From Heterodontus francisci (lineage: Eukaryota): a stretch of 64,000 nucleotides of DNA. Under the pieces are notes generated by a model. The model searched no databases. It was given only the letters and a program-made list of their open reading frames with translations, and had not been told where the DNA came from. Each line of letters begins with the position of its first letter. The first letter of the stretch is position 1. The DNA is taken from NCBI RefSeq assembly GCF_036365525.1, contig NC_090404.1, positions 3,534,001 to 3,598,000 on the forward strand, in the 5' to 3' direction. Positions 1 to 59,896 of this stretch are shown here, in pieces. Made by a program: the position numbers and the translations under genes.

Positions 1-170
1 TGCTGCGGACCTTAAATTGCTGCACGAACACATTTATTTATGGGGTGACACAGTCCAAGTTCAGAGAGCAGTGCAAGAGCATAGTGAAATATCCGGTTAC
101 ATCAATTATTCAGTTGATCGCTAAACAAAATAACAGAGAGCAACGCAGAGGCGGGTCCCAGTGTTCCTAG
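1..170 (+). CDS. 3' end of GPR139-like class A GPCR (paralog A, partial; TM7 and C-tail)
   Basis: Frame from base 3: LRTLNCCTNTFIYGVTQSKFREQCKSIVKYPVTSIIQLIAKQNNREQRRGGSQCS*, TAG at 168-170. 118/119 nt identical to 46407-46525 of paralog C. Confidence 0.9.
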   Translation, partial: LRTLNCCTNTFIYGVTQSKFREQCKSIVKYPVTSIIQLIAKQNNREQRRGGSQCS

Positions 171-214
171 GCCATGAATGTAATATTCATCCACAGATTT
201 CCTTCAACTAAATG

Positions 215-1270
215 ACACCAGGAATCCTTTTCGACCTGTCTGCAGCCTTTGACACACTATCCTCTTCCTGCACCTCTCCATTATTGTCCTGTTGGATGGA
301 GCTGTATTCGGCTGGTTCTATTCTTATCTATCTAACCACAGCAAGAGGATCGCTATCAATGGCTTCTCTTCCCTATCCCGCATCTTACTTGCTCCTCTCT
401 TTTTTTTTATCTACATGCTGTCTCTCACCTGCAATGTCCGGTTTCACATGTATGCTGATAACACTCAGCTCTACCTCACCACCACATTTTTTGTTATCAC
501 GTTTGCTTTGTTGAAAGTATCAGGCTACTTTTCCGACAACCAGTACTGGGTGAGCAGAAATTTCCTCCAACTAATATGGGAAGACAGAAACCATTGTCTT
601 CGGCCCCTGCTATAATTCTATACCCTAGCTACTGAGTCCTGCCCTCTCCCTGGTAACTGTATGTGACTTAACCAAACAGTTTTCAATCTTGGTATCACAT
701 TTGACACCTGCATGAACTTCCAACCACATATCAGCGACATCACTAAAACCTATTTCCACGACTGCACAACATTGCACAACTTTGTCCCTCCCTCAGTTGA
801 ATCCTGCTAAAACCTAAATTCATGCGTTTGTTACTTCTAGACCTAATTATTCCAATGCACTCGTCAACAACAACCCACAATCAACTTCAATAAACTTAAG
901 GTTGTCCCAAACTCTGCTGCCCGTCCTTATCCCACCAATTCCTTTTCGTCTATCACCTCTGCTCTCGCTGACCTACTTTAGCCCCCAGTCAAGCAATGCA
1001 TCGATTTTAAACTGTTAATCCTTGTTTTCAAAACTCTCCATGACCTCTCCCTTCATTATATATGTAAAATCATCCAGCTACGACAAAACTCTCTACATGT
1101 ATAACTTTCTGAAGCCCCTACAACCCTCTGAGATATCTTCTCTCCTCTAATTCTGGCCTCTTGCACAACCCTAATTTCAAAGACTCTACTATTAGCGGTC
1201 GAACTTCCAGCTGACAGGGCAGTAATCTCTGGAAATCCCTTCCTAATCGTCTCTGCATCTCTTTATCTCT
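215..1270 (+). mobile_element. Decayed L2-like LINE RT/3' fragment
   Basis: Broken RT motifs DLSAAFDT, WFYSYLS, FHMYADNTQLYL. Homologous to 46881-47552 plus 50000-50330. Confidence 0.75.
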
Positions 1271-1462
1271 CTCTCTCTCTCATCCTATTGAAAGCTAGTT
1301 GCATGAAACTATCACTGATTGTGGTAAAAGCCCATTTGGTTCACTAATGTCCTTTGAGGATTGAAATCTGCCATCCTTACCAGGTCTGGCCTACATACGA
1401 ACATAAATAGATACAAATTAGGAGCAGAAGTAGGACATTCGACCCCTCAAGCCAAGTTCGAC

Positions 1463-1720
1463 CGGTGTCTGCGTGGGTTTCCGCCGGGTGCTCCAGTTTC
1501 CTCCCACAGCCAAAGACTTGCAAGTTGATAGGTAAATTGGCCATTGTAAATTGCCCCTAGTGTAGGTAGGTGGTAGGAGAATGGTGGGGATGTGGTGGAG
1601 AATATGGGGTTAATGTCGGATTAGTATAAATGGGTGGTTGTTGGTCGGCAGAGACTCGGTGAGCCGAAGGGCCCGTTTCAGTGCTGTATCTCTAAACAAA
1701 TAAAAAAATAAATAAATAAA
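1463..1720 (+). mobile_element. HE1-like (V-SINE) shark SINE, 5'-truncated
   Basis: gtgtctgcgtgggtttcc...ggtaaattggccatt...tgctgtatctctaa plus (aaat)n tail, shared with four other copies in the window. Confidence 0.8.
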
Positions 1721-2550
1721 AGCCTGCTCCACCATTCAATAAGACCATAGCTGATCTGTTAGTGTTTCACACTCCCACCTGCCCGCGATAACTTTTGAAT
1801 CACTTGTGTAACAAGAATCTGTCTAACTCCACCTTAAAAATATTCAGTGACCAGTCTCCACCTCCTTCTGAGGCAGAGAGTTCCGAAGCCGCACAACCCT
1901 CTGAGAGAAAAAAAAATTCTCCTCGTCTCTGTCCTAAAAGGGCGACCCATAATTTTCAAGCAGTGACCACAAGTTCGGGGCTCACCTACAAGAGGAAACA
2001 TCCATCCTGTCAAGACTGTTCACGATCTTATAAACTTCAATCAAGTCTCCCCTCAGTCTTCTTACCCCCCATGAAAACAAACCCGGTCTGTCCAACCTTT
2101 CCTCATAAGACAACTCGCTCATTCCAGGTATCAATCTAGTAAACCTTCTCTGAACCACCTCCAATGCATTTAGTTCCTTCCTTAAATAAGGAGACCAAAA
2201 CTGAACACAATTTTTGATATGTGCTCTCAAGAATGCCCTGCATAACTGAGACATAACATCCTTACTTTTATTTTCAATTACTCTCATAATAAAGGATAGC
2301 ATTCGATTAGCTTTCTTTATTACTTGTTAACTGTATTCTAACTTTTTGGAACTCACGCACTGGAACATCTAGATCCCTCTGCACCCCGGAATTCTGCAGT
2401 CCTCCATTTAAATAATACGTTTTTCTTATTCTTCCTGCCAAAGTGAACAACTTCACATTTTCCCAGATTATACTCCATTTGCCAGATTTTTTACCACTCA
2501 CTCAACATATCAATATCGGTCTGCAACCTCCTTATGTCCTCTTCCTATCT
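1721..2550 (-). mobile_element. Decayed CR1 LINE 3' fragment
   Basis: Minus-strand CVQFWSPYLRK...LEVVQRRFTRLIPGM...RRLRGDLIEVYK. Confidence 0.85.
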
Positions 2551-4998: not shown

Positions 4999-5483
4999 AT
5001 GGAGCTGAAACTCCGTCTGACTCTGGTTATTGTCCTGATCACAGGGCAGTGATAGTGGGAACTTCCTACAATATTCCCCAGTTCTCAAACAATTTTCCAT
5101 CTCCATATCCGGGTAATTATTCTCTTTCTGTTACTCTGTCGAACCCGCCATGTTTTTTTCTGCTTATTTTCAGATATGAATAAGGGAGGCTCCATGTCCC
5201 AGTCAGAACAAGGAATCGGAACAGAAGCGGGTGCAGATGCAGCAAAAAGCTGCAGTTACTTCGGATCAGATTCAGCTACAATATATTACCTGTCCTGGAA
5301 TCGCCAGTATCCCCACCAAGCTCCTCAGTATATGGTCAGAGCCGATGGTTAAGAGTATAATGAGACGGCTCCCGGTTTTGAACACTTCAGCGGGAATCTC
5401 AAACGGAAGCAAGGCACTTTTCACTTGTCCATGAAAGACTTGAAGATTGCACACCGTGCCGTGTATTACTGTGCTCTGAGACC
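4999..5483 (+). pseudogene. TCR alpha/delta-type V gene segment, pseudogene (V1)
   Basis: Leader 4999-5044 MELKLRLTLVIVLIT with donor GT changed to GG (ggcagt). V exon from 5174 after ttttcag: ...SMSQSEQ...KSCSY...YYLSWNRQYPHQAPQYM...G*(5350-52)...HFSGNLKRKQGTFHLSMKDLKIAHRAVYYCALR. Followed by a 23-RSS. Confidence 0.9.
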
Positions 5484-5522
5484 CGCAGTAGATGGGAGTC
5501 CCTTGGACCTCATACAGAAATA
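5484..5522 (+). other. 23-bp-spacer RSS of V1 (degenerate heptamer)
   Basis: CGCAGTA - 23 nt - ACAGAAATA directly after YYCALR. Confidence 0.85.
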
Positions 5523-8614: not shown

Positions 8615-8653
8615 TTTTTTTGTATGGGCCGTCTGCGCTCCTGTACCAGTGTG
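8615..8653 (-). other. 23-bp-spacer RSS of V2
   Basis: Minus strand CACACTG (8653-8647) - 23 nt - ACAAAAAAA (8623-8615). Confidence 0.85.
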
Positions 8654-9076
8654 GGGCACAGCGCACTATGAAACACAGCAGAGTCAGAAACAAGAGCCCC
8701 GGCGACTCTTAAATGAATTGTTTTCTTGTCTTTGTCCAAAACAGCAGAAATCCGGTCTGGGAAATCTGGAGATTAACCCCCACCTCCTTTTCATATTTAA
8801 TCAGTAAATATCTTGGAGCGTCCCCACAACACTGGTTGTACCAGAAGACGTAGGGAAAGGTATCGGTTGTAGAGTAACTGCAGTTCAATATTACGGTCTG
8901 CCCTTCCTGAATCGTTAATTGAGGTGGATCCTGAGAAACTCATTCCTGAAACAAAGAACATAATACATCAAAAGTCTGGGAGTAGTTACCATCAATGGGG
9001 CACACTCTGACTATTTAAACATCGACTCACCGGGAAGCAGGACCATTATAATTAGTAAAGAAGATAGGGACCACAT
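8654..9076 (-). pseudogene. TCR alpha/delta-type V gene segment, pseudogene (V2)
   Basis: Leader 9076-9031 MWSLSSLLIIMVLLP/G|GTGAGT. V exon from about 8945: E*VSQDPPQLTIQEGQTVILNCSYSTTDTFPYVFWYNQCCGDAPRYLL...(frameshift)PDFPDRISAVLDKDKKTIHLRVAGALVSDSAVFHSAL. Stop, frameshift and YYC changed to FHS. Confidence 0.92.
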
Positions 9077-16434: not shown

Positions 16435-16504
16435 ATGCATGGCCGAGTAACTGGTGCAGTTTATGCCATTTACTATCCTATTCTTGCTGCTATCGGAGTC
16501 CCGG
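16435..16504 (+). CDS. GPR139-like GPCR paralog B, exon 1
   Basis: MHGRVTGAVYAIYYPILAAIGVP/G|GTGAGT, phase 1. Splices in frame to 21507 (GVPVNLVAIVILSR). Same structure as 40393-40459. Confidence 0.88.
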
Positions 16505-20560: not shown

Positions 20561-21506
20561 TTTCATGACTCGATGACTATTAGCGCACACATCGGAGTAT
20601 GAGAACAATGAATCAAACTAGGATGTTCTCAACACGGAGTACCAAGGAATTACTGATTTATCTATCTAGGTGGAAGATGTGAGGTGGCATACTGAGATAT
20701 TTGTCATGTGTTCATTATGTGGTCATGTGCTACTACAGTGGCAAATGGCAATGTGGCATCACATGCACTCCATTCTCACTGGGATGTGATTTCTGTTTAT
20801 GTGGAAGATCAGACAATGTTGCATGGTTATAAACATCACACCTCAACAAGAGGAAACAGGTTAGCGATATTTCTTACACAAACCATTTGATGCTTCTTAA
20901 ATTGCATTAGTCGGACAGCTCCTGCCTACTCAACATTACCCTGTGGAATCCCAATGAGTCAACCTAAACCGCTGTATTAGCATCTATCACAGTATACATT
21001 TTCGTATCACAAATATATTAATGCTGACTACTCTATTGTTAAGCAATTTCCTGATTTATGATACAACATAAAAAGTTGGCAGCTTAATATCACAAGTAAT
21101 GTCGAGACCTTCATTTGCTTGGGCCCTAAACCCTAGAATTTCCTTCCTAAACCTTACTACTTCTCTTTCCCTGTCTCCTCCTTTACTACGCTCCTTAAAA
21201 ACCGATCTCTCTGACCAACTGTTTGGTGATCTGCCCCAATATCTCCTTATGTGGCTCAGTCTCAAATTATAGCACTCCTATGAGACCCTTGCGGTACTTA
21301 ATTACGTTAAAGGGGCTGTGTTAATACTAGTTGTTGGAATTGTGGTTGTTGGGACACGGAAAATACTGGAAACCCACTAATAATTGTTTTGGTTTCCTTC
21401 CATAAATAATGAAATGTCAAAGATGTCACAGAATCCTGTCACACTGACGTGTCTGCTGCGAATTTGTTTAATAACTTCCCAATTTTATTTTTTTTCTTCT
21501 TCTCAG

Positions 21507-21964
21507 TTAACTTAGTGGCGATTGTGATCCTGTCCCGAAGAAGGTGCGGTCTCTCCGGATGTATCACTCTGTATCTGGTGTCCATGGCGGTGACGGATCT
21601 CCTGGTCGTTATCACTGCAGTGATATTCAATCGGATTACAGGCATTTATTTTCCAGTTAGTTTTATGTCCCTGACTCCGTCCTGTACTCTCAGTACCGTG
21701 ATAATCTACGCAGCCACGGAGAGCTCTGTCTGGTTAACCGTCGCTTTCACCTTCGACCGATTTATAGCCATTTGCTGCCAGAAGCTGAAAACAACCTATT
21801 GCACCGAGAAAACGGCGTCAGTGGTTGTAGGAACGGTCGGTTTTTTGAGCTGTTTAAAAAGCGTTCCCTGGTATTTTATGTACGAACCACTCTACCTAAT
21901 TAAAAATGTGCCGTGGTTTTGTAATGTAAAATCCAGCTTCTATAATTCACTCGCATGGACAGCC
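21507..21964 (+). pseudogene. GPR139-like paralog B, exon 2, 5' part (TM1-TM4/ECL2), interrupted by CR1
   Basis: Acceptor ttcttcttctcag|; YLVSMAVTDLL, VWLTVAFTFDRFIAICC, PWFC...AWTA, then CR1 sequence. Confidence 0.92.
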
Positions 21965-22813
21965 GACTTCACCTGCTGGAAGTGCATCCGTCTCCAGCTC
22001 CTATCAGACCGTGTTAGGGAATTGGAGCTGGAGCTGGATGAACTGAGGATCATTCGGGAAGCTGAGGGGTTGATAGATAGAAGCTACACGGAGGTCGTTA
22101 CTCCACAAATCAAAGGCAGCTGGGTAACAGTTAGAGGTGGGAAGAGGTCAGTGCAGGGATCTCCTGTGGTCGTTCCCCTCAACAACAAGTATACAGTTTT
22201 AGATACTGTTGGGGGGGACGGCCTATCGGGGGCAGGCTGCAGTGACCGGGCCTCTGGCACGGGGTCCTGCACTGTGGCTCAGAAGGGAAGGAGGGAGAAT
22301 GGGAGAGCACTAGTCATCGGGGACTCGATGGTGAGGAGTACGGACAGGCGGTTCTGTGGGCGCAGGCGAGACGCACGGATGGTTTGTTGCCTCCCTGGTG
22401 CCAGGGTCCGTGATGTTTGTGATCGCGTCTTCAGGATCCTTAAAGGGGAGGGGGAGCAGCCAGAGGTCGTGGTGCACATTGGCACCAACGACGTAGGAAG
22501 GAAGGGTGGCACAGATGTTAGAAGTGAGTTTAGGGAGTTAGGCTGGAAGCTGAAAGCTCGGACGGACAGAGTTGTTATCTCTGGTTTGTTGCCGGCGCCA
22601 CGTGATAGTGAGGCTAGGAATAGGGAGAGAGCACAGCTGAACATGTGGCTGCAGGAATGGTGTAGGAGGGAGGGCTTCCAGTTCTTGGATAATTGGACTG
22701 CATTCTGGGGAAGATGGGACCTGTTCAAACAGGACGGGCTGCATCTGAACCAGAGGGGCACCAATATCCTGGGAGGGAGGTTTGCTAGTACTGTTCGGGA
22801 GGGTTTAAACTAG
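21965..22813 (+). CDS. CR1 ORF1 (partial CxxC, leucine zipper, SGNH esterase), in frame with upstream GPCR exon
   Basis: TCWKC, LELELDELR, and SGNH blocks VIGDS / HIGTND / DGLH. Confidence 0.9.
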   Translation, partial: DFTCWKCIRLQLLSDRVRELELELDELRIIREAEGLIDRSYTEVVTPQIKGSWVTVRGGKRSVQGSPVVVPLNNKYTVLDTVGGDGLSGAGCSDRASGTGSCTVAQKGRRENGRALVIGDSMVRSTDRRFCGRRRDARMVCCLPGARVRDVCDRVFRILKGEGEQPEVVVHIGTNDVGRKGGTDVRSEFRELGWKLKARTDRVVISGLLPAPRDSEARNRERAQLNMWLQEWCRREGFQFLDNWTAFWGRWDLFKQDGLHLNQRGTNILGGRFASTVREGLN

Positions 22814-25704
22814 TTTGGGAGGGGGATGGGAACCGGACTTGTAATCCAGGGACCAGTGGGTCCACTCAGAAAGACAAAGAGTGTAGTGAGGTATTGGGGA
22901 AGGTAGCACTGTCGCAGAGGACAGATGGGCACGGAGAAGGGTTAAAGTGCGTATACTTCAACGCAAGAAGCATCAGGAATAAGGTGAGTGAATTGAAGGC
23001 GTGGATGGGCACTTGGGACTACGATGTTGTGGCCATCACTGAAACGTGGATAGGTGAGGGGGAGGAATGGTTTTTGGAGGTACCTGGTTATAGATGTTTT
23101 CATAAGATTAGGAATGGTGGTAAAAGAGGTGGGGGGGTGGCATTGTTAGTTAGAAATAGTGTAACAACTGCTGAAAGAATTTTCGAGGAGGATCTGCCGA
23201 CTGAGGCACTGTGGGTTGAGGTCAGGAACAGGAAAGGAGCAGTCACCTTGATGGGAGTTTTCTATAGGCCCCCCAATAGCAGCAGGGAGGTGGAAGAGCA
23301 GATTGGGAAACAGATTTTGGAAAGGAGCAGAAGTCACAGGGTAGTAATTATGGGGGATTTCAACTTCCCAAATATTGATTGGCAACTCTTTAGATCGAAT
23401 AGTTTGGATGGGGTAGTGTTTGTGCAGTATGTCCAGGAAGCTTTTCTGACTCAGTATGTAGACTGCCCGACCAGAGGGGAGGCAATATTGGATTTGGTAC
23501 TAGGTAATGAACCAGGGCAAGTGATAGAGCTGTTGGTGGGCGAGCACTTTGGAGATAGTGATCACAATTCTGTAGCATTCACTGTGGTAATGGAGAGGGA
23601 TAGGTATGTGCAACAGGGCAAGGTTTACAATTGGGGGAAGGGTAGATATGATGCTGTCAGGCAGGAACTGAGGAGCATAAGTTGGGAGCATATGCTGGCA
23701 GGGAAGGGCACGGTCGAAATGTGGAACTTTTTCAAGGAGCAGATAGTAGGGGCCATTGATAAGCATGTCCCTGTCAGACAGGGAAGGGATGGTCATGTGA
23801 GGGAACCGTGGTTGACAAGAGAGGTTGAGAGTCTTGTTAGGAAGAAGAAGGATGCGTATATAAAGTTGAGGAAAAAGGGCACAGGCATAGCTCTGGAGGG
23901 ATACAAGATGGCCAGGAAGGATCTGAAGAAAGGGATTAGGAGAGCTAAGAGAGGGCATGAAAAATGCTTGGCGGGTAGGATAAAAGAAAACCCCAAGGCC
24001 TTTTATGCGTATGTCAGAAATATGAGGATGACTAGGGGGACCATAGGTCCGGTCAAGGACAATAGCGGGAGACTGTGTGTTGAGCCGGAAGAGATAAGTG
24101 AGGTTTTGAATGAGTACTTCTCTTCGGTATTTACGAATGAGAAGGGGTGTATTACTGAAGAGGACGGTGTGAAACAGACTGGTAAGCTCGAGGAAGTGCT
24201 CGTTAGGAGGGAAGATGTGTTGGGGTTTTTGAATAACTTGAAGATAGACAAGTCTCCCGGGCCTGACGGGGTATATCCAAGGATGTTATGGGAAGCAAGG
24301 GATGAAATTGCAGAGCCGCTGGCAATGATCTTTTCATCTTCTCTGCTGACGGGGGTGGTACCAGGTGATTGGAGGGTGGCAAATGTTGTGCCCCTGTTCA
24401 AGAAAGGGAATAGGAACAACCCTGGGAATTACAGGCCAGTTAGTCTTACTTCGGTGGTAGGCAAGTTGATGGAAAAGGTGCTGAGGGATAGGATTTCTGA
24501 GCATCTGGAAAGACACTGCTTGATTCGGGACAGTCAGCACGGTTTTGTGAGGGGTAGGTCTTGCCTCACAAGCCTGATTGAATTCTTTGAGCAGGTGACC
24601 AAGCAAGTGGATGAGGGTAAACCAGTGGATGTGGTGTACATGGATTTTAGTAAGGCATTTGATAAGGTCCCCCATGGTAGACTTATGGAGAAAGTCAGGA
24701 GGCATGGGATAGTGGGGAATGTGGCCAGTTGGATTAAGAATTGGCTAACTGATAGAAGGCAGAGAGTGGTCTTAGATGGTAAATACTCAGCCTGGAGCCC
24801 AGTTACCAGTGGCGTGCCGCAGGGATCAGTTCTGGGTCCTCTCCTGTTTGTGATTTTTATTAACGACTTGGATGAGGAAGTCGAAGGGTGGGTCAGTAAA
24901 TTTGCAGATGATACAAAGGTTGGTGGAGTTGTGGATACCGAGGAGGGCTATTGTCGTCTGCAAAGGGACTTGGATAGGTTGCAGTGCTGGGCTGAAAAGT
25001 GGCAGATGGAGTTTAACCCTGAAAAGTGTGAGGTCGTCCATTTTGGAAGGACAAACATGAATGCAAAATACTGGGTTAACGGTAGGGTTCTTGGGCATGT
25101 GGAGGAGCAGAGAGACCTTGGGGTCTATGTGCATAGATCATTGAAAGTTGCAACTCAAGTGGATAGGGCTGTGAAGAAGGCATATGGGGTGTTAGCGTTC
25201 ATTAGCAGAGGGATTGAATTTAAGAGCCGTGAGGTGATGATGCAGCTGTACAGGACCTTGGTAAGGCCTCATTTGGAGTACTGTGTGCAGTTCTGGTCGC
25301 CTCATTTTAGGAAGGATGTGGAAGCCTTGGAGAGGGTGCAGAGGAGATTTACCAGGATGTTGCCTGGAATGGAGAATAAGTCTTACGAGGAAAGGCTGAA
25401 CATTCTAGGCCTCTTCTCATTAGAAAGGAGAAGGATGAGGGGTGACATGATAGAGGTTTATAAGATGATCAGGGGAATAGATAGGGTAGACAGTCAGAAA
25501 CTTTTTCCCCGGGTGGAGCAAAGCATTACAAGGGGTCATAAATTTAAGGTGAAGGGTGGGAGATATAAGGGGGATGTCAGGGGAAGGTTCTTTACCCAGA
25601 GAGTGGTCGAGGCATGGAATGCCTTGCCCGGGGAAGTTGTTGAGTCAGAAACTTTAGGGACTTTCAAAAGGCTTTTGGATAGGTATATGGATAAAGGAGA
25701 ATGA
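22801..25704 (+). CDS. CR1 ORF2: APE endonuclease plus reverse transcriptase
   Basis: YFNARS, ITETW, MGDFN, SDH (EN); [27 protein letters not shown] (RT). Frame open from 22789; the track start at 22894 is TTG and the first ATG is at 23005. Confidence 0.95.
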   Translation, partial: GFKLVWEGDGNRTCNPGTSGSTQKDKECSEVLGKVALSQRTDGHGEGLKCVYFNARSIRNKVSELKAWMGTWDYDVVAITETWIGEGEEWFLEVPGYRCFHKIRNGGKRGGGVALLVRNSVTTAERIFEEDLPTEALWVEVRNRKGAVTLMGVFYRPPNSSREVEEQIGKQILERSRSHRVVIMGDFNFPNIDWQLFRSNSLDGVVFVQYVQEAFLTQYVDCPTRGEAILDLVLGNEPGQVIELLVGEHFGDSDHNSVAFTVVMERDRYVQQGKVYNWGKGRYDAVRQELRSISWEHMLAGKGTVEMWNFFKEQIVGAIDKHVPVRQGRDGHVREPWLTREVESLVRKKKDAYIKLRKKGTGIALEGYKMARKDLKKGIRRAKRGHEKCLAGRIKENPKAFYAYVRNMRMTRGTIGPVKDNSGRLCVEPEEISEVLNEYFSSVFTNEKGCITEEDGVKQTGKLEEVLVRREDVLGFLNNLKIDKSPGPDGVYPRMLWEARDEIAEPLAMIFSSSLLTGVVPGDWRVANVVPLFKKGNRNNPGNYRPVSLTSVVGKLMEKVLRDRISEHLERHCLIRDSQHGFVRGRSCLTSLIEFFEQVTKQVDEGKPVDVVYMDFSKAFDKVPHGRLMEKVRRHGIVGNVASWIKNWLTDRRQRVVLDGKYSAWSPVTSGVPQGSVLGPLLFVIFINDLDEEVEGWVSKFADDTKVGGVVDTEEGYCRLQRDLDRLQCWAEKWQMEFNPEKCEVVHFGRTNMNAKYWVNGRVLGHVEEQRDLGVYVHRSLKVATQVDRAVKKAYGVLAFISRGIEFKSREVMMQLYRTLVRPHLEYCVQFWSPHFRKDVEALERVQRRFTRMLPGMENKSYEERLNILGLFSLERRRMRGDMIEVYKMIRGIDRVDSQKLFPRVEQSITRGHKFKVKGGRYKGDVRGRFFTQRVVEAWNALPGEVVESETLGTFKRLLDRYMDKGE

Positions 25705-25812
25705 TGGGGTATAGATTAAATTGTCCTTGACAGAGGACAAAGGATCGGCACAACATTGTGGGCCGAAGGGCCTGTTCTGTGCTGTATGTTCTATGTTCTA
25801 TGTTCTATGTTC

Positions 25813-26262
25813 TATGATTGGTTTGCACGTGTTTTAAATCCAGGTCTCCCATTCCTCCTGATTCTGTTGCTCAATGCTCTGACCGTCAGACACATCCTAG
25901 CGGCCAGTAGAGGTCGCAGGAGACTCCGGGCTCTCAGCAATGGAGTTGCTCAGAGTGACCCAGAGTTGGAGAATAGGAGAAAGTCCATTGTTTTACTCTT
26001 CGCCATCTCGGGGAGCTTCGTCCTGTTGTGGATGACGTATGTTGTAAATTTCCTGTATGTAAAAATCACAAAAGAATCTTATTTCGGAGGTTCCAATTTC
26101 AATGACTCAAAGTTCATTCTCCAAGAGAGTGGAAACATGCTTCAGCTCTTGAGCTGTTGCACCAACACGTGTATTTATGCAGTGACCCAGAGAAAATTCA
26201 GAGAGGAGTTGATGAATGCGGCAAAATATCTTGGGAATCGAATTGTTAAATTCGTAAACTAG
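25813..26262 (+). pseudogene. GPR139-like paralog B, exon 2, 3' part (TM5-TM7)
   Basis: YDWFARVLNPGLPFLLILLLNALTVRHIL...SDPELENRRKSIVLL...CCTNTCIY...*. The reconstituted gene is 978 nt, the same length as paralog C. Confidence 0.92.
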
Positions 26263-33971: not shown

Positions 33972-34010
33972 AGTTTTAGTATAAGCTCTTGACCTACCTA
34001 CATCACTGCG
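33972..34010 (-). other. 23-bp-spacer RSS of V4 (degenerate heptamer)
   Basis: Minus strand CGCAGTG - 23 nt - ACTAAAACT. Confidence 0.85.
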
Positions 34011-34300
34011 TGAGGGGTTAAGACACAGAAGTATTTCCTGGAATCCCCAGCTGTCACCTGTGAAACTGTTAAGCTGATGGCTCTGCATGTTTTGGCCAGA
34101 GATGAGGTGAAGCCGTGTTTGTCAAATTTGTCACTGTCACTGAACCCATCGGTACAGCGAATGAGAATATACTCTGGGCCCAACCCCGTACCAGCACAGA
34201 CAAGCACTCGCCACCTCGGTATCGGAACAGGTGATAGTCGAGATATTTCTCTCCTGGATGGTCATCTCTGCCTTTGGTTGGTGGGTGATCAATTCTGCAT
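34011..34300 (-). pseudogene. TCR alpha/delta-type V exon, pseudogene (V4); no leader found
   Basis: Acceptor tcctttag|; AELITHQPKAEMTIQERNISTITCSDTEVASACLCWY, then a deletion/frameshift, then GLGPEYILIRCTDG...FTSSL...ISLTVSQVTAGDSRKYFCVL. Confidence 0.88.
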
Positions 34301-34586
34301 CTAAAGGACAGAACAGAAAAAACGTGCAGATACCATGGAACAGAAAACCCAGCAGACGGGGAGACGATCACCAAGATGACCTTCGGATGTCAGCATTTTG
34401 TTAATCGTTTATGGGGATGTGGGAAAGACTGGTATTTATTTTCCATTGCTAATACCCCTCGAGAAGGTGCTGATGGGTCTTGAACCATTGAAGTCCAGTG
34501 TGGTCAAGGAATTCCGACAGTGTCATTGGGAAGGAAGTTCCAGGATTTTGACCCATCAAAAGTGAAGGAATGGCAATACATTCCAT

Positions 34587-40392: not shown

Positions 40393-40459
40393 ATGCTTGA
40401 AACATTTCACAGTATCAGCAAAGTATACTACTTGATTCTTGCTGTTATTGGTGTTCCTG
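40393..40459 (+). CDS. GPR139-like GPCR paralog C, exon 1
   Basis: MLETFHSISKVYYLILAVIGVP/G|GTAAGT, TATAAA at 40301; in frame with the exon at 45633. Confidence 0.9.
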
Positions 40460-42099
40460 GTAAGTGACTATTACTATTGAGGTTGTGTAAGTCTGTGTGT
40501 AAGCTGGACTCTGCATTGACTCAGTGACAGATGATGTTACAAACAGATATAATGATCTCTGTTTATAAAGAGACCACCTCAGTGATATCATTTTGATGAG
40601 TCAAATGTTCTGAATTATCATTGTGACGCTATGCCATTGCCTCAACTCAAAAGAAACGTCTGTTTCTAATGCAAAGTTCAGTAAATTATCAACTTATTCA
40701 TTTAGTGGAACATGGCTGATTGTTGAATCAGACCTCAGTGCAGGAAAATCTATAAGCGAGGAGGGCCTGTCTTTATAGAATTGACTCAGTTTCAGCTCCG
40801 AACCAAAGTGGAACACCTGAACCCAGTGTTCATTCGTTATTGGGCGCATCTGTAGCTGTATAATTTCACTGAGTTGGGATCAATAACCGAGTGTAATACC
40901 TGCCCCTGCTATTCATGTATTACTGGGAGTATATGTCATGTGGAATTGTACTGAGAGTGGGTCACTAACAGGTGTGAAACACCTGATTCTATTTTCCATG
41001 TACGACCGGGAGTATCTGTCACTGTAAAATGCAGAGTGGGTCACTAACCGGAGTGGAACAAGCCAGTTGTACATTGAACTCATTGTTTCAGGTGACTTCT
41101 CTCTACACTCCATGGAGTTGGTTTCGTGTTGTACGAACGGAATCGATTGAAAAGGGCAAGGTATTTTATTGTTGGTTGAAGATGTTTAGGAATAAGTGTA
41201 TAAAGTGAAATGCATTGCATTTCTCTGTTTCCTATTAAACTGCACCATCAGAAACAGATGTTTTACGATTTACTGAGAGCTAAACAGCAGGGCAGCACTG
41301 TTACAGTATTCCAATCCTCGGTATGATGACATTTTTACTCTAGGTCTAGTTAGTGGAAATACTTTCTGATGTTGATTAAGTCCCTTTCCCCAACATCTCC
41401 TGGGACTCTGTCGGTCTTGAGTTTTGAATTTTATTGCCTTGCTCTTACACAGGATGAATGTTGGGTTGTGGTTATTTTTATTGCACAGCTGTAATTAGCT
41501 AAGTTTTCAGGAAATAATTCTTATCCATGATTCAGAATCTCTGTGCATAGAACCTGCACCGATCACTCCCCATAGCTCAGTGAGATGTGTTCCTGGAACG
41601 AGACACATATAAATGAGGAACATACATTTCGAGTTTTCATAATACATAGATCAGTCCGGGAGAAGTAAACAATAACATAAGTAAACTGTTAATAATGAAA
41701 TAAACGGTGCACTGCTTCAACAAATAAACTACCACAATATCGACATATATTATGAATGAACTGATGACTGTGATTAACTAATACACAAGTTGCAGAGAAT
41801 TACGTGGGCATTACAGAATCTGGCCATTTAGTCAGTTATGTCTGTGTTTATATTCTGCACGAATCTCTCACCATCCGAGCCCATTTAAAACTATCTTCCA
41901 ATCCATCTATTCTTTCCTCCCTCATGTACTTATCAACCTTCCCCTGAAATGCTATTCACCTCAACTACTTCCTGTGGTAACAAGTTCCACATTTGCACCG
42001 TTGTGCATAACGAAGTCTCTCCTGCATTCCTTCTTGGATTTAACAGTGACAACCCTCTATTGAAGAACACCATGTTTGGTCTTCCTCATAAATTTATTT

Positions 42100-42426
42100 T
42101 TAGTTTTTTATTTAGAGATACAGCACTGAAATAGGCCCTTCAGCCCACCGAGTCTGTGCCGACCATCAACCACCCATTTATACTAATCCTACATTCCTAC
42201 CACATCCCCACCTTCTCTATATTCCCCTACCACCTTCCTCTATTAGGGGCAATTTATAATGGCCAATTTATCTATCAACCTGCAAGTCTTTGGCTGTGGG
42301 AGGAAACTGGAGCACCCGGTAAAACCGGGAAAACTTTCAAACTCCACACAGACAGCACCCAGAATTGAATCTGGATCGCTGGAGCTGTGAGGCTGCAGTG
42401 CTAACCACTGCACCACTGTGCCGCCC
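42100..42426 (-). mobile_element. HE1-like SINE inserted in an old minus-strand CR1 remnant
   Basis: Same consensus as 32876-33217. Confidence 0.85.
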
Positions 42427-43269
42427 AAAGAATAATGCCTACCCCAAATTTCCTCTATCCACCTCCTTTATGATTTTAAAGGTCGATATTAGGTCAGCAC
42501 TCAACCTTCTCTTATCTATGGAAAAGAGCCTGTTCAAACTTTCCTGATAATTACTGTATCTGAATTCTAGTGTCATTCTTGCAAAAAATATTTCTGCTTT
42601 CCGCAGGGTCTCAATGTTATTTTTGTAACATGAAGAGAAGAACTGTACACAACGCGCTAATTCTTGCATAAACCAACGTTTACTATAACTACTCTGCTTT
42701 TACATCTCCTTCTCTACAAAGAGCCCCAGTGTTGTAAACACATTTCAAATGTCGTGTTACCTTCTTTCTCTAATTCAAGTCATTTATGAATCTATACCCC
42801 CGGAACAATTGGTCCTTGCAATACTTTATCAATTATTTGCCTCATTTCTGGCATAAATGTATTGGATTCGTTTGATGGATTCATTCAGTTATTTCTTAGC
42901 AGTTAGTTCCTCCCCTTTCAGATCTCTCTGTCTTTTTCAGCCTCTGACTCCTCACCAACTGGCTCACTCTGTCCCTACTATCAATCAACCTATGTAGCTT
43001 CCTTCCTTCTGAGGTTAGAGCTGAGCTCAGATGTCCATTTATATATCTGACCATGTCAGTACGACCCTTTCTGATCCAAAGTTAAGTTAACCCGAGATGC
43101 CCTAAACTCACAACAGGCGGGATCCTTCCTGGCCCACAGCAGTAGGCGTTGCCTGGTCATGTTCCCTCCACAGACTCCTGTGGGTCCATTCCGAGGGCCC
43201 TTTATGGTATTTACTAGTTTTGTTCTGTACACGCACACCACTCCCACTGACACTCTTCCCTCCCTTACT

Positions 43270-44530
43270 GGCTCTGAGCTACTCAGGCTCCCTGTTTCGC
43301 CTCATTCTTCGGTACAATGATGAACGTGTGTTACCAATTCCTTCTTTCACGCTGAACTGGAAAATATAATCAACAGTGCTTCTAATTTCCCACCACCCTC
43401 GCCTTCACATTCTCATTCTCTGACACGTCACGCCCCTTCCTAGAATTCTCTATCTCCATTTCACGGCATAGGCTTTCTACCAATAGCTTTTGTGATCCGA
43501 CCGGCTCTCACAGCTACCTTGACAACACTTCCTCTGTAAGATCTTACATTGTAGAGCGCTATTATAAATCACTGGAAGAAACATACGGCACGACCTTTTG
43601 TAAAGTGAGCCTTTATTATTGACTCCCCCTATTGGCACACTGCGATTGCTACACCAAGCATGTACAGTGGCCGCAGATGAACAATTCACTATATATCAAA
43701 TGAACAATACAATACATTGTCCAAGCCTGCTTCCTGTCATGACTTTTCTATTCTCCCATTTCTCTGACTCCTTTGCATCTGTTCTGACGATGCCACTTTC
43801 CAACCCGTGCTTCTGAATTGTCTTTATTTTCCTCAACCGAGGATTCACCTCTACTGTGGTTGCCAGGGGTTTGACCATGTCTATCGCATTTCTCGCGTTA
43901 CTGCCCTCACCACCTCCCCTCGCTGCCAGAACCATGACAGTGTTCCCTTTGTTCTCAGCTTCTATTCCAACAACCTCCACATTCAACAGATCATCCTTCC
44001 TCCCATCTCCACCGTGTCAGCCAAACCCACCACTAAGCACATATTCCTCTCAACTCTTGTTCCACACGCCTTGTGACACACTGGGGTTCACTCTTCTATC
44101 AGCCCCAACATCGGTTCCCTTCCCGCCGACACCTTCCTATGCAAACACAGGAATTGCAACATCTGCCCTTTTCTCTCCTTCCTTCCGACTACCAGGATCC
44201 CAAGCCTTCTATGCAACATAGACTTACTTGTACTTCTTCCAATTTAGTTACTGCATTGACTGTCCATGAATCAATGACCTTGCAGAAGACTAAAGACAGA
44301 TTGAGTGATTGCTTTGCTGAACACTTCGTTTAAGTCTGGAAGCACATCCCTAAGCTTCCAGTCGCTTGCTTCTATATATCTACATCTCGCTCCAGCTCTG
44401 GCCTGTCTGTCCTTGGCCTCCTACATTGTTCCACATCTAAGCTCAATGTTGAACAACGCTTTGTTTTTCGAGGAGGTACTTTATTGCCTGCCAGACTCAA
44501 CACTGAGATTAAAAACTTCAGATCACAACC
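43270..44530 (+). mobile_element. Decayed Penelope-like element
   Basis: FLRY.D-like RT remnant, then TCTSSNLV and TKDRLSDCFAEH GIY-YIG-region remnants. Confidence 0.65.
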
Positions 44531-45632
44531 ACAAATCCCATTTTCTCTCGGATTCCCTGTGCTGGTAATGGAGGATGCCTACACCAGTGCCACTGGGAGT
44601 GGAGAATGTGCGCGCTGGTACTTGGGTCTGGGTCCCCTATTGGCACACGGCTGACTGGCAGGTGTAGAACCATGGGTCCACCCACCTTTCTCCAGCAAAT
44701 TTCCGGACCATTGGAGCCCTCTCCGCTTGACTCGATTTGTTTTGGTCCATTCCACTTTGTTATTCTAAATTAAGCATTTAAACGTCTTCTGGAACCTGCT
44801 TTAATTTTCCCATTCGCCTTCCACCATCATCCCTTTCGTCATTGACTCATTTCTGCTCTCCACCAGATCACAAACATCCTTTGCTCTTTCCTCCCCACTA
44901 AATCCCACTCTTTTCTGACTCTATCATTGCTTTATAACTGTTAATTTCTACTATCTTCCTGTTTTAATGAAAGATTATCAAGCTGAAGCGTTAACTTTGT
45001 TTGTCTGTCCACATATGCTGTCTGATTTTCCTTTTTTTCTCAAGTATTTAGACTGGGATAGTAAGAGGGCTGGGTAACACAGGTGGTGGTTTGGGATGGA
45101 GGGCGCGGTGGGGGCGCAGTGCCTTGGTGGGGTCGGACTTCCAACAGCCAGTTCCCACCCCCACCCCCCACCACTGTGAAGTTTTTGTTTTCTGGGGTGC
45201 AGCTTTTGTCCTTGACAGGTTCTCTGACAAAACGTCAGCTTGACTGACAGGCTTCTCTTCCATTTACCAGGCGTGGACTCCGGAATAGGCTGCATGACCA
45301 GATAGGTCCCATCCTGGACCCCGGAGGATCTGTCCGATCCTGGGTAATCTGTTCACGGACATGGGGCAGGGTCCAACCCCCACCGGCAGGGGTCTTTGCT
45401 TGAGGGGCTTCCGATCGGGGGCTGTGCTTGGGAGCCCAGGCGCAAACCGTCTTGTTAATCCTGGCCTACAAGCAGTGTTGCAGAGGCAAGTTCCATCTCT
45501 TTTAAAAACGTTCCCCAGGACTGAGAAACCCGGTTTTTGGTGATAAAATCCAGCCGCCTCCTGCCTCGACTCAGATACGGAGAATATTTGATCAGTAACT
45601 TCCAGTCTTTTTTTTCCTTCTCTCTCTTACAG

Positions 45633-46543
45633 TTAATTTAGTGGCGATTATGATCCTGTCCCGTGGAAAGTGCGGACTCTCCACCTGCACCACTCGCTAC
45701 CTGGTGTCCATGGCAATAGCGGATCTACTGGTCATTATCACTGAGGTCATACTGTCCCAGAACAGTTACTATTATTTCCCAGGATCTTTCCTAGACATCA
45801 CTCCTGTGTGTCGATTTATCCACATCCTGATTAATGCAGCCACAGACTGTTCTGTCTGGTTCACCGTCACTTTCTCCTTTGATCGATTTGTCACCATTTG
45901 TTGTCACAAGCTGAAAACAAAATATTGCACTGGGAAATCTGCAGCGGTGGTTCTGGCAACAACCTGCATTCTGCTCTGTTTAAAAAACATCCCTTACTAC
46001 TTTACATATGAATCTGGAGAGATAATCGACAATGTACCATGGTTCTGTTATGATAAGCCTAGCTATTATACTGAGCCCGGATGGGTGGGAATGGATTGGT
46101 TTGACAAAGTTTTAACTCCATTGCTTCCATTCCCTTTAATTCTGTTGCTCAATGCTCTGACAGTCAGATACATTTTAGTAGCCAGTCAAGTCCGTAAGGG
46201 ACTGAGGGGTCAGAGCAAGGGAGAAAATCGCAGTGACCCAGAGATGGAGAGCAGAAGGAAGTCTGCTATTTTACTCTTCACCATTTCGGGCAGCTTCATA
46301 CTTCTGTGGTTGTCATATGTTATAGATTTTTTACATTACAAAGTTGCAGGAACAGATCCCAACAATTACAATGCTTCTTTATATATCTTTGGAGAAGTTG
46401 GATTTATGCTGCGGACCTTAAATTGCTGCACGAACACATTTATTTATGGGGTGACTCAGTCCAAGTTCAGAGAGCAGTGCAAGAGCATAGTGAAATATCC
46501 GGTTACATCAATTATTCAGTTGATCAAGAAACAAAACAACTGA
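45633..46543 (+). CDS. GPR139-like GPCR paralog C, exon 2 (intact; 325 aa spliced)
   Basis: Acceptor ctctcttacag|; seven hydrophobic segments; YLVSMAIADLL, FSFDRFVTIC, PWFC, LLPF, CCTNTFIY; TGA at 46541-43. Confidence 0.93.
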
Positions 46544-47552: not shown

Positions 47553-49999
47553 GTAGTTGTTATGGGGGACTTTAACTTTCCTAATATCGAATGGAAATAC
47601 TACAGTTCGAGTACTTTAGATGGGTCAATTTTTGTCCAGTGTGTGCAGGAGGGTTTTCTGACACAGTATGTAGACAGGCCAACCAGGGGCGATGCCACAT
47701 TGGATTTGGTACTGGGTAATGAACCCGGCCAGGTGTTAGATTTACATGTAGGTGAGCACTTTGGTGATAGTGATCACAATTCGGTTAGGTTTACCTTCGC
47801 GATGGGCAGGGACAGGTATATACCACAGGGCAAGAATTATAACTGGGGGAAAGGAAATTATGATGCGATTAGGCAAGATTTAGGATGCGTAGGATGGGGA
47901 AGGAAACTGCAGGGGATGGGAACAATCGAAATGTGGAGATTATTCAAGGAGCAGCTACTGCGTGTCCTTGATAAGTATGTACCTGTGAGGCAGGGAGGAA
48001 GTTGTCGTGCGAGGGAGCCGTGGTTTACTAAAGAAGTTGAAGCGCTTGTCAAGAGGAAGAAGAAGGCTTATGTTAGGATGAGACGTGAAGGCTCAGTTAG
48101 GGCGCTTGAGAGCTACAAGCTAGCCAGGAAGGATCTAAAGGGAGAGCTAAGAAGAGCAAGGAGAGGACACGAGAAGTCATTGGTGGATCGGATCAGGGAA
48201 AACCCTAAGGCTTTCTATAGGTATATCAGGAATAAAAGAATGACTAGAGTTAGATTAGGGCCAATCAAGGATAGTAGTGGGAAGTTGTGTGTGGAATCAG
48301 AGGAGATAGGGGAAGTGTTAAATGAATATTTTGCGTCAGTATTTACAGTAGAGAAAGAAAATGTTGTTGAGAATACTGAGATTCAGGCTACGAGGCTAGA
48401 TGGGATTGAGGTTCACAAGGAGGAGGTGTTATCAATTTTGGAAAGTGTGAAAATAGATAAGTCCCCTGGGCCAGATGGGATTTATCCTAGGATTCTCTGG
48501 GAAGCCAGGGAGGAGATTGCAGAGCCTTTGTCCTTGATCTTTATGTCGTCATTGTCGACAGGAATAGTGTCGGAAGACTGGAGGATAGCAAATGTTGTCC
48601 CCTTGTTCAAGAAGGGGAGTAGAGACAGCCCTGGTAATTATAGACCTGTGAGCCTTACTTCGGTTGTGGGTAAAATGTTGGTAAAGGTTATAAGAGACAG
48701 GATTTATAATCATCTTGAAAAGAATAAGTTCATTAGAGATAGTCAGCACGGTTTTGTGACGGGTAGGTCGTGCCTCACAAACCTTATTGAGTTTTTCGAG
48801 AAGGGGACCAAACAGGTGGATGAGGGTAAAGCAGTGGATGTGGTGTATATGGATTTTAGTGAGGCGTTTGATAAGGTTCTCCACGGTAGGCTATTGCAGG
48901 AAATACGGAAGTATGGGGTTGAAGGTGATTTAGAGCTTTGGATCAGAAATTGGCTAGCTGAAAGAAGACAGAGGGTGGTGGTTGATGGCAAATGTTCATC
49001 CTGGAGTTTAGTTACTAGTGGTGTACTGCAAGGATCTGTTTTGGGGCCACTGCTGTTTGTCATTTTTATAAATGACCTGGATGAGGGTGTGGAAGGGTGG
49101 GTTAGTAAATTTGCGGATGACACTAAGGTCGGTGGAGTTGTGGATAGTGCCGAAGGATGTTGTAGGGTACAGAGGGACATAGATAGGCTGCAGAGCTGGC
49201 CTGAGAGATGGCAAATGGAGATTAATGCGGAAAAGTGCAAGGTGATTCACTTTGGAAGGAATAACAGGAATGCAGAGTACTGGGCTAATGGGAAGATTCT
49301 TGGTAGTGTAGATGAACAGAGAGATCTTGGTGTCCAGGTGCATAAATCCCTGAAGGTTGCTACCCAGGCTAATAGGGCTGTTAAGAAGGCATATGGTGTG
49401 TTAGCTTTTATTAGTAGGGGGATCGAGTTTCGGAGCCACGAGGTCATGCTGCAGCTGTACAAAACTCTGGTGAGGCCGCACCTGGAGTATTGCGTGCAGT
49501 TTTGGTCACCACATTATAGGAAGGATGTGGAAGCTATGGAAAGGGTGCAGAGGAGATTTACTAGGATGTTGCCTGGTATGGAGGGAAGGTCTTACGAGGA
49601 AAGGCTGAGGGACTTGAGGTTGTTTTCGTTGGAGAGAAGGAGGAGGAGAGGTGACTTAATAGAGACATATAAGATAATCAGAGGGTTAGATAGGGTGGAT
49701 AGTGAGCGTCTTTTTCCTCGGATGGTGATGGCAAACACGAGGGGACATAGCTTTAAGTTGAGGGGTGATAGATATAGGACAGATGTCAGAGGTAGTTTCT
49801 TTTCTCAGAGAGTAGTCGGGGCGTGGAACGCCCTGCCTGCAGCAGTAGTAGACTCGCCAACTTTAAGGGCATTTAAGTGGTCATTGGATAGACATATGGA
49901 TGAAAATGGAATAGTGTAGGTCAGATGGTTTCACAGGTCGACGCAACATCGAGGGCCGAAGGGCCTGTACTGCGCTGTAATGTTCTAATTCTAATAATA
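47553..49999 (+). mobile_element. Young 5'-truncated CR1 with a 785-aa open ORF2 fragment (47562-49919)
   Basis: MGDFN, SDH, QHGF, FADD motifs; flanked by atct at 47549-52 and 50000-03 (possible 4-bp TSD). Confidence 0.95.
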
Positions 50000-54664: not shown

Positions 54665-54665
54665 T

Positions 54666-54713
<48 letters not shown>

Positions 54714-56959: not shown

Positions 56960-56998
<39 letters not shown>

Positions 56999-58486
56999 TC
57001 TATCTGTCTATGTGCCAATTTGTCTATCAAACTATCTATCTATTGAACTATCTATCTATCACAACCTCTGTCTATCTTTTTGTCTATGTACCTATCTATT
57101 TCCTTCTTTCTTTCTTTCTATCTATTAAAATGTGCTGGGCAGATTCTTCAGTGGACTGTTCCTATTAACAGGGTGTCTGAGACGCTGGATATATTTCCTT
57201 GCCTTGAAGATAAGAACAGTTCATATAAATGGAATTTAAAAAAAATAACAATTGACTCTTGTTGCTGGGTAGATTAGTTTCTGAATAGGCCTCATTGACA
57301 ATGTTAAAGATTTGATTTTCAGCCAAGCGGTCAGTAACGAGGAAACAGAACTTTTATTTACTGCACAGAACCCCCAGATGCTTCCTGTAGAAGGCATTAG
57401 GCGTTCAAGCCTCCCTGACGTTAGATGGCTGGGTTGCTGCCAAATACTGTGTGGGGCAGATTAGCGTGAATATGAATAGACAAAGATGGGATTTAAGCAT
57501 TTGTAAATTAACTTATTCAGTAGTGAGAAAGGAAACGTGTTCGTGGTATCGCATCTAAAGAATGACTATCATTACATTCAGCACTCAAATCATGATAAAA
57601 TAGGATCGCAACATACTAAATTGAGCCACGGGACAATTAAATATAATTCTAGATAATTAAGACCATTTATTCCGTGTTGCATGAAGTTCAAGGGAGAAAT
57701 GTTATTGACCCCACACACCGTCTTGAGATATGTGGGGGTCGTAAAACAAATAATTAAATAAGTAGGTACAATTGCCTTGAACCTGCTGCACTTCCTTTAA
57801 TATTCTCACAGAGCTGTAAATCATATTCAAGGACTGGTAACAGCTGCGAACTGGGCAGTTTAATTTATGATAACTTTGGATTGCTTAACAAGCCCTCTCA
57901 TATCGAGTGGGTAGAAAGTGGCCAGTTTGCGATCCCTTCCCACAACAGATAATAGTAATATAAAAGTAAATAAGAGCCTGCTGCGCCTTTCATGTCTGAT
58001 CTGAGTGTGGCCTCAACTCTACTTTCCAGCCTTGACTCCCTTGTAGATCAAAAATCTGTCTTTGATGTTCTGTAACGCACCGATAAGTCCTGATATACCG
58101 TGTTCCTGATGCCAGTGTATGTTGCACTGCCTGTCACTATTAGAGTTAGCTGCAATGATTTCGGAGTCGAGGAATGGGTTTGCTGATCGCCGTGTCGGTT
58201 CTGATTCACTAGCTTCTCTTTTTGCGAAAGCTGATCTGAGTTTTATCTGTGCCGTCAACTCACTCCTTAATTATTAGGAAGCGAACTTCTTTAAAAGCAA
58301 ATTTTCAAAGAACTGGCTTAGGGTAACAGAATCAGGAGTAGTACGAGAAATGCAGAGAGAGAGAGAGAGAGAGAGAAACTTATATAAAGTGAGGCGTTTC
58401 TATTCATCTCTTGCCCTAAATCGTGTAACTACAGCCATTAAAACTGAAAATAGAATCACTTCATTAATATCCCGCATTAAGAGTCA

Positions 58487-58803
58487 TAGAGAGATACAGC
58501 AATGCAACAGGCCCTTCTGCCCACCGAGTCTGTGCCGACCAACAACCACCCAATTATACTAATCCTACATTAATCCCATATTCCCCACACATCCCCACCA
58601 TTTTCCTACCACCTACCCATACTAGGGGCAATTTACAATGGCCAATTTACCTATCAACCTGCAAGTCTTTGGCTGTGGGAGGAAACCGGGGCACCCAGCA
58701 GAAACCCACGCGATCACAGGGAGAACTTGCAAACTCCGCACAGGCAGTACCCAGAACCAAACTCAGGTCGCTGGAGCTGTGAGGCTGCAGTGCTAACCAC
58801 TGT
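58487..58803 (-). mobile_element. HE1-like SINE
   Basis: Same consensus as the other copies. Confidence 0.85.
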
Positions 58804-59345
58804 ACCATAGTTGCATAAATCAATTTTTAAAAATCGATGGTACTTTATTGGTATAGATTGAGGGTATATATAAGAAATGGAGTAACATATACTAGCAGTC
58901 ACTTTAGACCCTGGTAACGTAATTTAATCTTAGGGATTAGCATCGTCTGCGAAGAGTTGAGGAAATAAAGGGATTTAATTCACAGCCCACAATGCAATGC
59001 AACTGAATACATGCATTCTCAACTGCAATATCGCCGTTTGCTACCAAGTAACACATTGCTTTGAAACTATACTGTCAAATAACTATCTCTGGATACAGTT
59101 AAAAAAAAATTTACATTTAATAATAACCCAGTGTAATGACATGAGTCCATTCTGTTAGTGATGCGGAACGTGGTACATGGATCCAGTAACCGCCTGTATC
59201 AGGGAATCAATAAGAGGCGCCTGTAACCTCGCCCACTTCTGCCTGGTATTTAAATATCAGGCGCTGGAACCGCAATGCAACAGTCCGGGAGCGGGTTTGC
59301 TCAGTCAGCTCTTGATCGAACCATTTTCCCCGAATTGACAGAAGG

Positions 59346-59896
59346 ATGAGGTCGGCGATTTCTCTCAGTCTGTTGCTGATTTTCCTATCCCGTGAGTTGT
59401 TGTTATTGTCCGAGTCTCTCGCTGTCACTGTTGCAATGTTAATCTCTCTCTGGAATGTTACAGAGTCAGGAATCATTTCACCAGGATTAATCCTCTGGGT
59501 TTTTGATATTTTTTACAGGTGTCCATTCGGATGTCGTGTTGACTCAGCCAGAGGCAGAAACTAGGAGTCCTGGGTGCTCCCTGAGACTGACCTGTAAAAC
59601 CAGCGGGTTCAATTTTGGCAGCCACACCATGCACTGGGTCCGACAGGTTCCCGGGCAAGGGCTGGAGTGGTTGGTTTACTACTATATTTCATCCAATATT
59701 CATTACGCCCCAGGGGTTAAGGATCGATTTACTGCGTCCAAAGACACTTTAAACAACATCTTCGCTTTGGACATGAAGAACCTGAAGACTGAAGACAACG
59801 CCATCTATTTCTGTGCAAGAGACGCCGGTACAGCAGTGCGTACAAGCATTTCTATGGACTACTGGGGACAAGGGACCATGGTGACAGTGACTGCAG
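59346..59896 (+). CDS. IgM-type heavy-chain leader (59346-59391) plus joined VH-D-JH exon (59519-59896)
   Basis: [16 protein letters not shown]|GTGAGT...ttacag|[13 protein letters not shown]...LTCKTSGF...[15 protein letters not shown]...RFTASKD...[32 protein letters not shown]|GTAAAA. In frame, with no RSS between V and J. Confidence 0.95.

Follow-up and report, generated by a model that had tools for sequence, protein, structure and literature searches.

Unrelated gene families can reside inside antigen-receptor loci; trypsinogen genes, for example, form a block near D-J-C within the mammalian T-cell receptor (TCR) beta locus, TRB. In human, the olfactory receptor (OR) genes OR10G2 and OR4E2 lie between TRAV1-1, TRAV1-2 and TRAV2, and in mouse Olfr1507-1509 lie between TRAV1 and TRAV2, an arrangement that is conserved in sheep (PMC4574546). 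In elasmobranchs, the antigen-receptor complex (AgRC) links IgM, IgW, and IgNAR clusters to TCR alpha/delta, with TCR alpha/delta-type variable (V) exons sitting between immunoglobulin heavy-chain (IgH) clusters and some V domains intermediate between TCR and immunoglobulin (Ig) (Flajnik et al. 2025, PMC12227049). Here we analyze a 64,000-nt stretch of the genome of the shark Heterodontus francisci (contig NC_090404.1 of assembly GCF_036365525.1, forward-strand positions 3,534,001 to 3,598,000; hereafter the window), in which two-exon class-A G-protein-coupled receptor (GPCR) genes alternate with pairs of TCR-type V segments and end at an IgH variable-diversity-joining (VDJ) exon. The arrangement is best explained by the passive co-residence of two multigene families, each undergoing birth and death, at the edge of the shark antigen-receptor complex, an account that we regard as probably correct.

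Gene layout was examined within the window, which contains no runs of N. From left to right it carries GPCR-A, V1 on the forward strand and V2 on the reverse strand, GPCR-B, V3 (forward) and V4 (reverse), GPCR-C, and a germline-joined IgM-type VDJ. A tblastn search of the window with GPCR-C as the query finds three GPCR copies, all on the forward strand, and a V-domain hidden Markov model (HMM) applied to all six-frame open reading frames (ORFs) finds exactly five V exons. Both searches bear out the gene order and strands given in the original prediction, which had been made from the letters of the DNA. The order is thus real, but the quality of its components was overstated: V1, V2, and V4 are dead, as is GPCR-B. 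CR1-type long interspersed elements (LINEs) and short interspersed elements (SINEs) are abundant throughout. A scan for a 12- or 23-bp-spacer recombination signal sequence (RSS) followed by an FGXG or WGXG motif reveals no joining (J) segment in the window. The Ig octamer ATGCAAAT occurs at a single site in the window, distant from every V and below the chance expectation, and is uninformative.

The relationships among these genes do not follow their alternating order. GPCR-A and GPCR-C share 91% amino acid identity and are sisters on short branches (SH-like approximate likelihood ratio test support of 96) in a quick IQ-TREE phylogeny of 90 family members. GPCR-B, on the other hand, reaches at most 63% identity in comparisons with the best 120 relatives, and in the tree it branches as the outgroup of all 88 relatives from other species. 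The five V domains show no cross-unit pairing, every pairwise identity lying between 23 and 34%; V1, which follows GPCR-A, and the V of the VDJ, which follows GPCR-C, are 28% identical. The matches in a self-alignment of the window are confined to transposon copies, GPCR exons, and ~1.3 kb of 3′ flank common to GPCR-A and GPCR-C, the latter broken up by a 5′-truncated CR1 LINE in the GPCR-C flank (47553..49987, forward strand; Pfam RVT_1). Because this flank homology stops ~1.3 kb past the stop codon, before V1 and the VDJ are reached, the V segments downstream were not part of the recent A/C duplication. The proposal that GPCR and V genes duplicated together as a mixed cassette is accordingly without support inside the window: V identities are flat, the age of the A/C pair does not match that of GPCR-B, and the intervals between GPCRs lack collinearity outside transposons.

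A homologue search with V3 as the query gave no matches, probably an effect of its length window and its requirement for shared 5-residue words, and is uninformative about relatives; V classes were assigned from matches to solved structures. V3 (32280..32653, forward strand; coding region 32280..32614, RSS 32615..32653) is the sole intact member of V1–V4, with a Pfam V-set match and an open frame that retains Cys23, Trp41, and a YLC motif containing Cys104. TCR alpha V domains make up almost all of its best 60 matches among solved structures (E ~2e-12), and its RSS, CACAGTG-23-ACAGAAACT, has a canonical heptamer. No intron separates its signal peptide from its V domain, the two sharing one exon. 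This structure is unusual among rearranging V segments; in V2 and the VDJ the leader is split in the usual way. A 17-bp minisatellite (31721-32066; consensus TGTGAGCTCAGAGACAG) with ~20 copies and a 130-bp higher-order period ends ~215 bp 5′ of the V3 start codon.

V2 (8615..9076, reverse strand) is a TCR-alpha-like pseudogene that, among solved structures, matches TCR alpha V domains best (E 5e-11). It comprises a leader (9076..9031), a V exon (8945..8654), and an RSS (8653..8615) of CACACTG-23-ACAAAAAAA. A frameshift between 8751 and 8754 interrupts the start of framework region 3 (FR3; ...ISQTG / RISAVL...), the second Cys is replaced by Ser, and splicing cannot bring the split leader into frame with the V exon, where a TGA stands at 8942. 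V1 (exon 5194..5484, with RSS to 5523, forward strand) is likewise a pseudogene, matched by the HMM on two pieces and bearing an in-frame TAA at 5350..5352. The heptamer of its RSS, CGCAGTA-23-ACAGAAATA, has lost its CAC (5485-5491). The first half of V1 resembles V2 and V3, while FR3 (5353-5484) matches antibody VH and nanobody chains with higher scores than TCR chains, mixed features that fit the “intermediate” V domains of Flajnik et al. 2025 (PMC12227049). The third pseudogene, V4 (33977..34396, reverse strand), has a possible leader ATG at 34396, a V exon at 34298..34016, and an RSS at 34015..33977. A frameshift at 34187 falls within a shortened FR2 (WY|GLGPEY), the HMM again matches on two pieces, and matches to solved V-delta1, V-alpha, and VH structures are weak. 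Its RSS, CGCAGTG-23-ACTAAAACT, has also lost the CAC of the heptamer (34015-34009). V1 and V4 lie on opposite strands and belong to unrelated families, and their heptamers carry the same change, A to G at position 2 (CGCAGT-), which could be a coincidence or reflect recurrent RSS silencing.

The alpha/delta-like matches of V3 and V2 agree with the earlier assignment of these segments to the TCR type. The further claim that all four V segments carry a 23-RSS holds for the spacing, which is 23 bp in each of the four, but not for the heptamer, in which CAC is kept only in V2 and V3. Just these two sites are returned when the whole window is scanned strictly for RSSs on both strands; each abuts the coding end of a V, and they are for that reason not chance matches. 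Judged by its sequence, V3 alone combines an open exon, Cys23, Trp41, and Cys104, TCR-like matches, and a 23-RSS with a CAC heptamer, the features expected of a functional TCR alpha/delta V segment, and it is the only plausible working V segment of the four.

GPCR-C is an intact two-exon gene corresponding to the 325-aa model P0001. Exon 1 (40393..40458, forward strand) encodes the 22 residues MLETFHSISKVYYLILAVIGVP, which match the P0001 N-terminus exactly (22/22), and is followed by a GTAAGT donor. Exon 2 (45633..46543, forward strand) is an ORF preceded by an acceptor, is 100% identical to P0001, and matches Pfam 7tm_1 over profile positions 5-260 in an open frame (E 1.6e-23), which places the protein in class A. 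Only the 3′ end of GPCR-A lies in the window (3..167, forward strand), the remainder of the gene preceding the window start. It consists of the last 44 codons shared with GPCR-C (3..134), an 11-codon extension, and a stop. The two C-termini are 97.7% identical by tblastn and the shared codons 96% identical at the nucleotide level. The TGA stop of GPCR-C (46541-46543) is AGA in GPCR-A, giving rise to an 11-residue C-terminal extension, REQRRGGSQCS (135-167). The GPCR-A tail, ...IAKQNNREQRRGGSQCS, is the end of P0002, a 336-aa model from the same 59.5-Mb contig that is 91% identical to GPCR-C.

GPCR-B is a broken gene, since a full-length CR1-type LINE splits its second exon. Exon 1 (MHGRVTGAVYAIYYPILAAIGVP, then a GTGAGT donor; 16435..16503, forward strand) was located by BLOSUM scoring, with the exon-1 peptides from 46 family members serving as queries. 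The 5′ half of exon 2 (21506..21958, forward strand) extends from the end of transmembrane helix 1 (TM1) to extracellular loop 2, with 57% tblastn identity to GPCR-C residues 1-148 and a Pfam 7tm_1 match (E 5e-12). The 3′ half (25816..26262, forward strand) runs from TM5 to the C-terminus and stop, with 54% identity to GPCR-C residues 152-295 and a second 7tm_1 match, so that GPCR-B matches the class-A profile as two halves. Between them, with clean junctions at 21958/25816, lies the 3.86-kb LINE (21959..25815, forward strand; Pfam Lipase_GDSL_2, Exo_endo_phos, and RVT_1), which encodes an esterase in ORF1 and an apurinic endonuclease/reverse transcriptase in a 936-aa ORF2 and ends in an (ATGTTCT)n tail. 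Within 21449-25815, ORF2 is intact and the esterase-type ORF1 reads in frame with the TM1-TM4 half of the GPCR. The element looks very young, and its insertion may be polymorphic. A polypyrimidine tract and AG acceptor precede exon 2 in both GPCR-B and GPCR-C; these genes are not intronless.

The last gene in the order is an IgM-type heavy-chain VDJ (59347..59896, forward strand), in which a leader (59347..59392) and an intron precede a joined V-D-J (59519..59896). The V-D-J forms a single open frame with no RSS, contains the FR4 WGxG motif, ends at a G|GTAAAA splice donor, and can be aligned with antibody VH chains through FR4. It is 75% identical to Heterodontus HV01, an IgM-type VH, and 68–76% identical to shark Ig heavy-chain V regions, including 68% at full coverage against Rhincodon typus. 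Its earlier identification as an IgH VDJ is upheld by the leader, intron, joined frame, and donor. Germline-joined IgH genes are familiar from sharks, examples being nurse shark IgM1gj and the joined VDJ genes of horn shark. The present gene resembles them in the fusion of V, D, and J in one RSS-free frame with an intact J donor, and differs in that it is known from its VDJ alone, the constant exons lying beyond the window; no C-type exons are seen in 59897..64000, an interval that is partly LINE. Two CR1 copies of the same family, 97.9% identical and mutually inverted, lie on either side of the VDJ region (47992-49988 and 62004-64000). The pair points to recent LINE activity and offers a substrate for inversion.

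The GPCR genes belong to a very large family. A homologue search returned 1837 matches, of which the best 120 were examined; these span six shark orders, and 73 of them are from Heterodontus francisci, distributed over 21 contigs, many of them chromosome-sized. Among these best 120 of 1837 matches, Heterodontus has at least 73 distinct clusters at 90% identity, and species-specific clades appear in the tree of 90 family members. In a DNA run from the same organism, contig depths sum to 3,300–22,000 over exon 2, as against ~10 over the unique intron, a comparison that is qualitative only. The original prediction of an expanded GPR139-like family is borne out by these matches, annotated “probable GPR139”, although public names within the family vary (“probable GPR139”, “neuropeptides capa receptor-like”) and neighboring protein clusters include FMRFamide-receptor-like ones.

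Human GPR139 is an orphan receptor that responds to aromatic amino acids and peptides. It is the top solved-structure match of GPCR-C (E 2e-13), followed by the ghrelin receptor (E 8e-10). The likeness to human GPR139 (7VUG-7VUJ) is distant. Both receptors contain the class-A fold motifs D/ERx, W6.48, and NxxxY; the shark family carries DRF where DRY is usual. Human GPR139 is a single-copy, conserved neuronal gene, whereas the shark family has hundreds of copies. The agonist-pocket residues of GPR139 have been defined by mutagenesis (PMC5430874). In a phmmer alignment of P0001 with 7vug_R, four of the five pocket residues compared differ: F109(3x33), H187(5x43), R244(6x51), and N271(7x38) are replaced by N, D, Y, and F in GPCR-C, and the sole match is W241(6x48), the generic toggle-switch Trp. 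With these residues replaced, GPCR-C should not be assumed to have the mammalian ligand profile, and aromatic amino-acid sensing, which had been suggested by analogy, loses its basis, none of F109, H187, R244, and N271 being kept. By their pocket residues, the shark receptors would thus be GPR139 by name only. Very few canonical olfactory receptors have been reported in sharks (PMC11979771), and a catshark sensory-genome paper describes small canonical olfactory repertoires with no mention of a GPR139-like family; no paper on a shark GPR139-like expansion was found in the literature searched. The family is a candidate unrecognized chemoreceptor family and, with a two-exon structure and distinct copies that number at least many dozens in each species, represents the more useful lead from this locus.

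Several features of the window weigh against passive co-residence. The pattern of a GPCR followed by a forward and a reverse V occurs twice, on the same strands and with similar spacing, the forward V starting 5–6 kb after the GPCR and the reverse V ending 6–8 kb before the next exon 1, which is suggestive of an old unit; in addition, the comparison begins at the GPCR-A 3′ end, and a V3/V4-like pair upstream of GPCR-A is possible. These features could reflect an ancient block duplication of forward V, reverse V, and GPCR, after which the V segments diverged and decayed and GPCR-A and GPCR-C became alike through later gene conversion or a duplication of the GPCR alone. The unusual CGC heptamer change common to V1 and V4 would also be in keeping with such a unit. 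We nevertheless consider this history unlikely. Identity across the two units (V1-V3, 29%; V2-V4, 27%) is in the same range as identity within them (V1-V2, 27%; V3-V4, 32%); the A-B and B-C intervals share only LINE and SINE copies, in different order and not collinear; and the A/C homology ends well short of V1 and the VDJ. Order alone is weak evidence because perfect alternation has a chance probability of ~0.05–0.1 (by our own count, three GPCRs and three V units can be ordered in 20 ways, 2 of which alternate). A bolder version, in which GPR139-like and TCR alpha/delta V genes were amplified as linked units at several sites in the genome, with the antigen-receptor complex serving chemoreceptor-like GPCRs both as a nursery and as a somatic editor that acts by V(D)J deletion, and with locus choice under shared regulation, strikes us as very unlikely. 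That the alternation or the V frameshifts arise from mis-joined or mis-polished repeats is scarcely credible. The GPCR family is highly repetitive, which makes collapses conceivable, and the V4 frameshift adjoins a G4 run. Each V pseudogene, however, has two or three independent defects, and substitutions such as the V1 stop, the V2 Cys to Ser change, and the altered heptamers are not explained by polishing errors; the LINE junctions in GPCR-B are also clean. Moreover, independent short contigs from a DNA run, probably of the same individual, form a single-copy-depth tiling path over most of 40442..45640 and show no differences from the assembly, and the local assembly is therefore sound over most of that interval.

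The GPCRs might instead be functionally coupled to the immune locus, being expressed in or regulated with lymphocytes, or being deliberately deleted, inverted, or activated by V(D)J recombination to produce somatic mosaicism of receptor content. Their physical embedding, together with one V segment predicted to be recombination-competent (V3) that lies upstream of GPCR-C on the same strand, would permit such coupling, which we nonetheless judge highly improbable. V1, V2, V4, and GPCR-B are dead, and most Heterodontus family members reside on many other chromosomes. GPCR-C exon 2 was found in no sequencing run on record as RNA. Three small runs from the same sample, guessed to be RNA and of unrecorded tissue, give almost no coverage of the exons and no 40458>45633 joint; this is weak evidence against coupling and not evidence of silence. 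The mammalian analogue argues in the same direction, as we know of no immune role for the OR genes within TRAV. The somatic loss of GPCR genes envisaged in the original prediction survives as a trivial consequence of embedding, for which the OR genes among TRAV are a textbook precedent (PMC4574546), but not as a mechanism, only one of the four V segments being able to recombine efficiently.

Under passive co-residence, the window would lie on the periphery of the elasmobranch antigen-receptor complex, the chromosome region that brings IgH mini-clusters together with TCR alpha/delta genes. Its V segments would be old, TCR alpha/delta-type members of unrelated families, scattered in both orientations and for the most part decayed, and the germline-joined IgM-type VDJ would mark the start of an IgH cluster. 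Into the same DNA, a dispersed two-exon class-A GPCR family that expands lineage-specifically would have seeded copies by local tandem duplication, with GPCR-B an old copy recently destroyed by the LINE and GPCR-A and GPCR-C a recent duplicate pair. The alternation would then be a by-product of two multigene families undergoing birth and death in the same duplication-prone DNA rather than a co-amplified functional cassette, and finding GPCR copies beside V segments is unsurprising because the family has so many of them. Use of V3 in V(D)J joining would delete the GPCR genes lying between V3 and J-C in that lymphocyte, again as a passive consequence. If so, the contribution of the locus to the published map of the elasmobranch antigen-receptor complex is a single detail, that members of a very large orphan GPCR family sit inside it, and a link to the immune locus would matter only given non-random genome-wide adjacency or lymphoid expression.

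The arrangement had been put forward as having no prior description, which is wrong for two of its three components, V exons between IgH clusters (PMC12227049) and ORs among TRAV segments (PMC4574546). Its V/VDJ part is the one already published for elasmobranchs (PMC12227049): an IgM-type VDJ has TCR alpha/delta-type V exons no more than 25 kb away, and V1 has an Ig-like FR3, as in the published “intermediate” V domains. What differs is the presence of GPCR genes, the terms GPR139 and GPCR having 0 occurrences in the main text of that study (PMC12227049). The trypsinogen genes in TRB are similar in being an unrelated multigene family embedded in an antigen-receptor locus, but they do not alternate with V segments and are not receptors. 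A closer parallel is the mammalian TRAV array, at the edge of which class-A GPCRs of a tandemly duplicating family likewise alternate with TCR alpha/delta V segments and are expected to be deleted in T cells using the outermost V segments. The mammalian ORs are intronless, whereas the shark GPCRs are GPR139-like and have two exons, and the shark V segments occur in both orientations, are mostly pseudogenes, and have an IgH VDJ adjacent to them. The parallel between the two loci may tell which chromatin tolerates the growth of multigene families.

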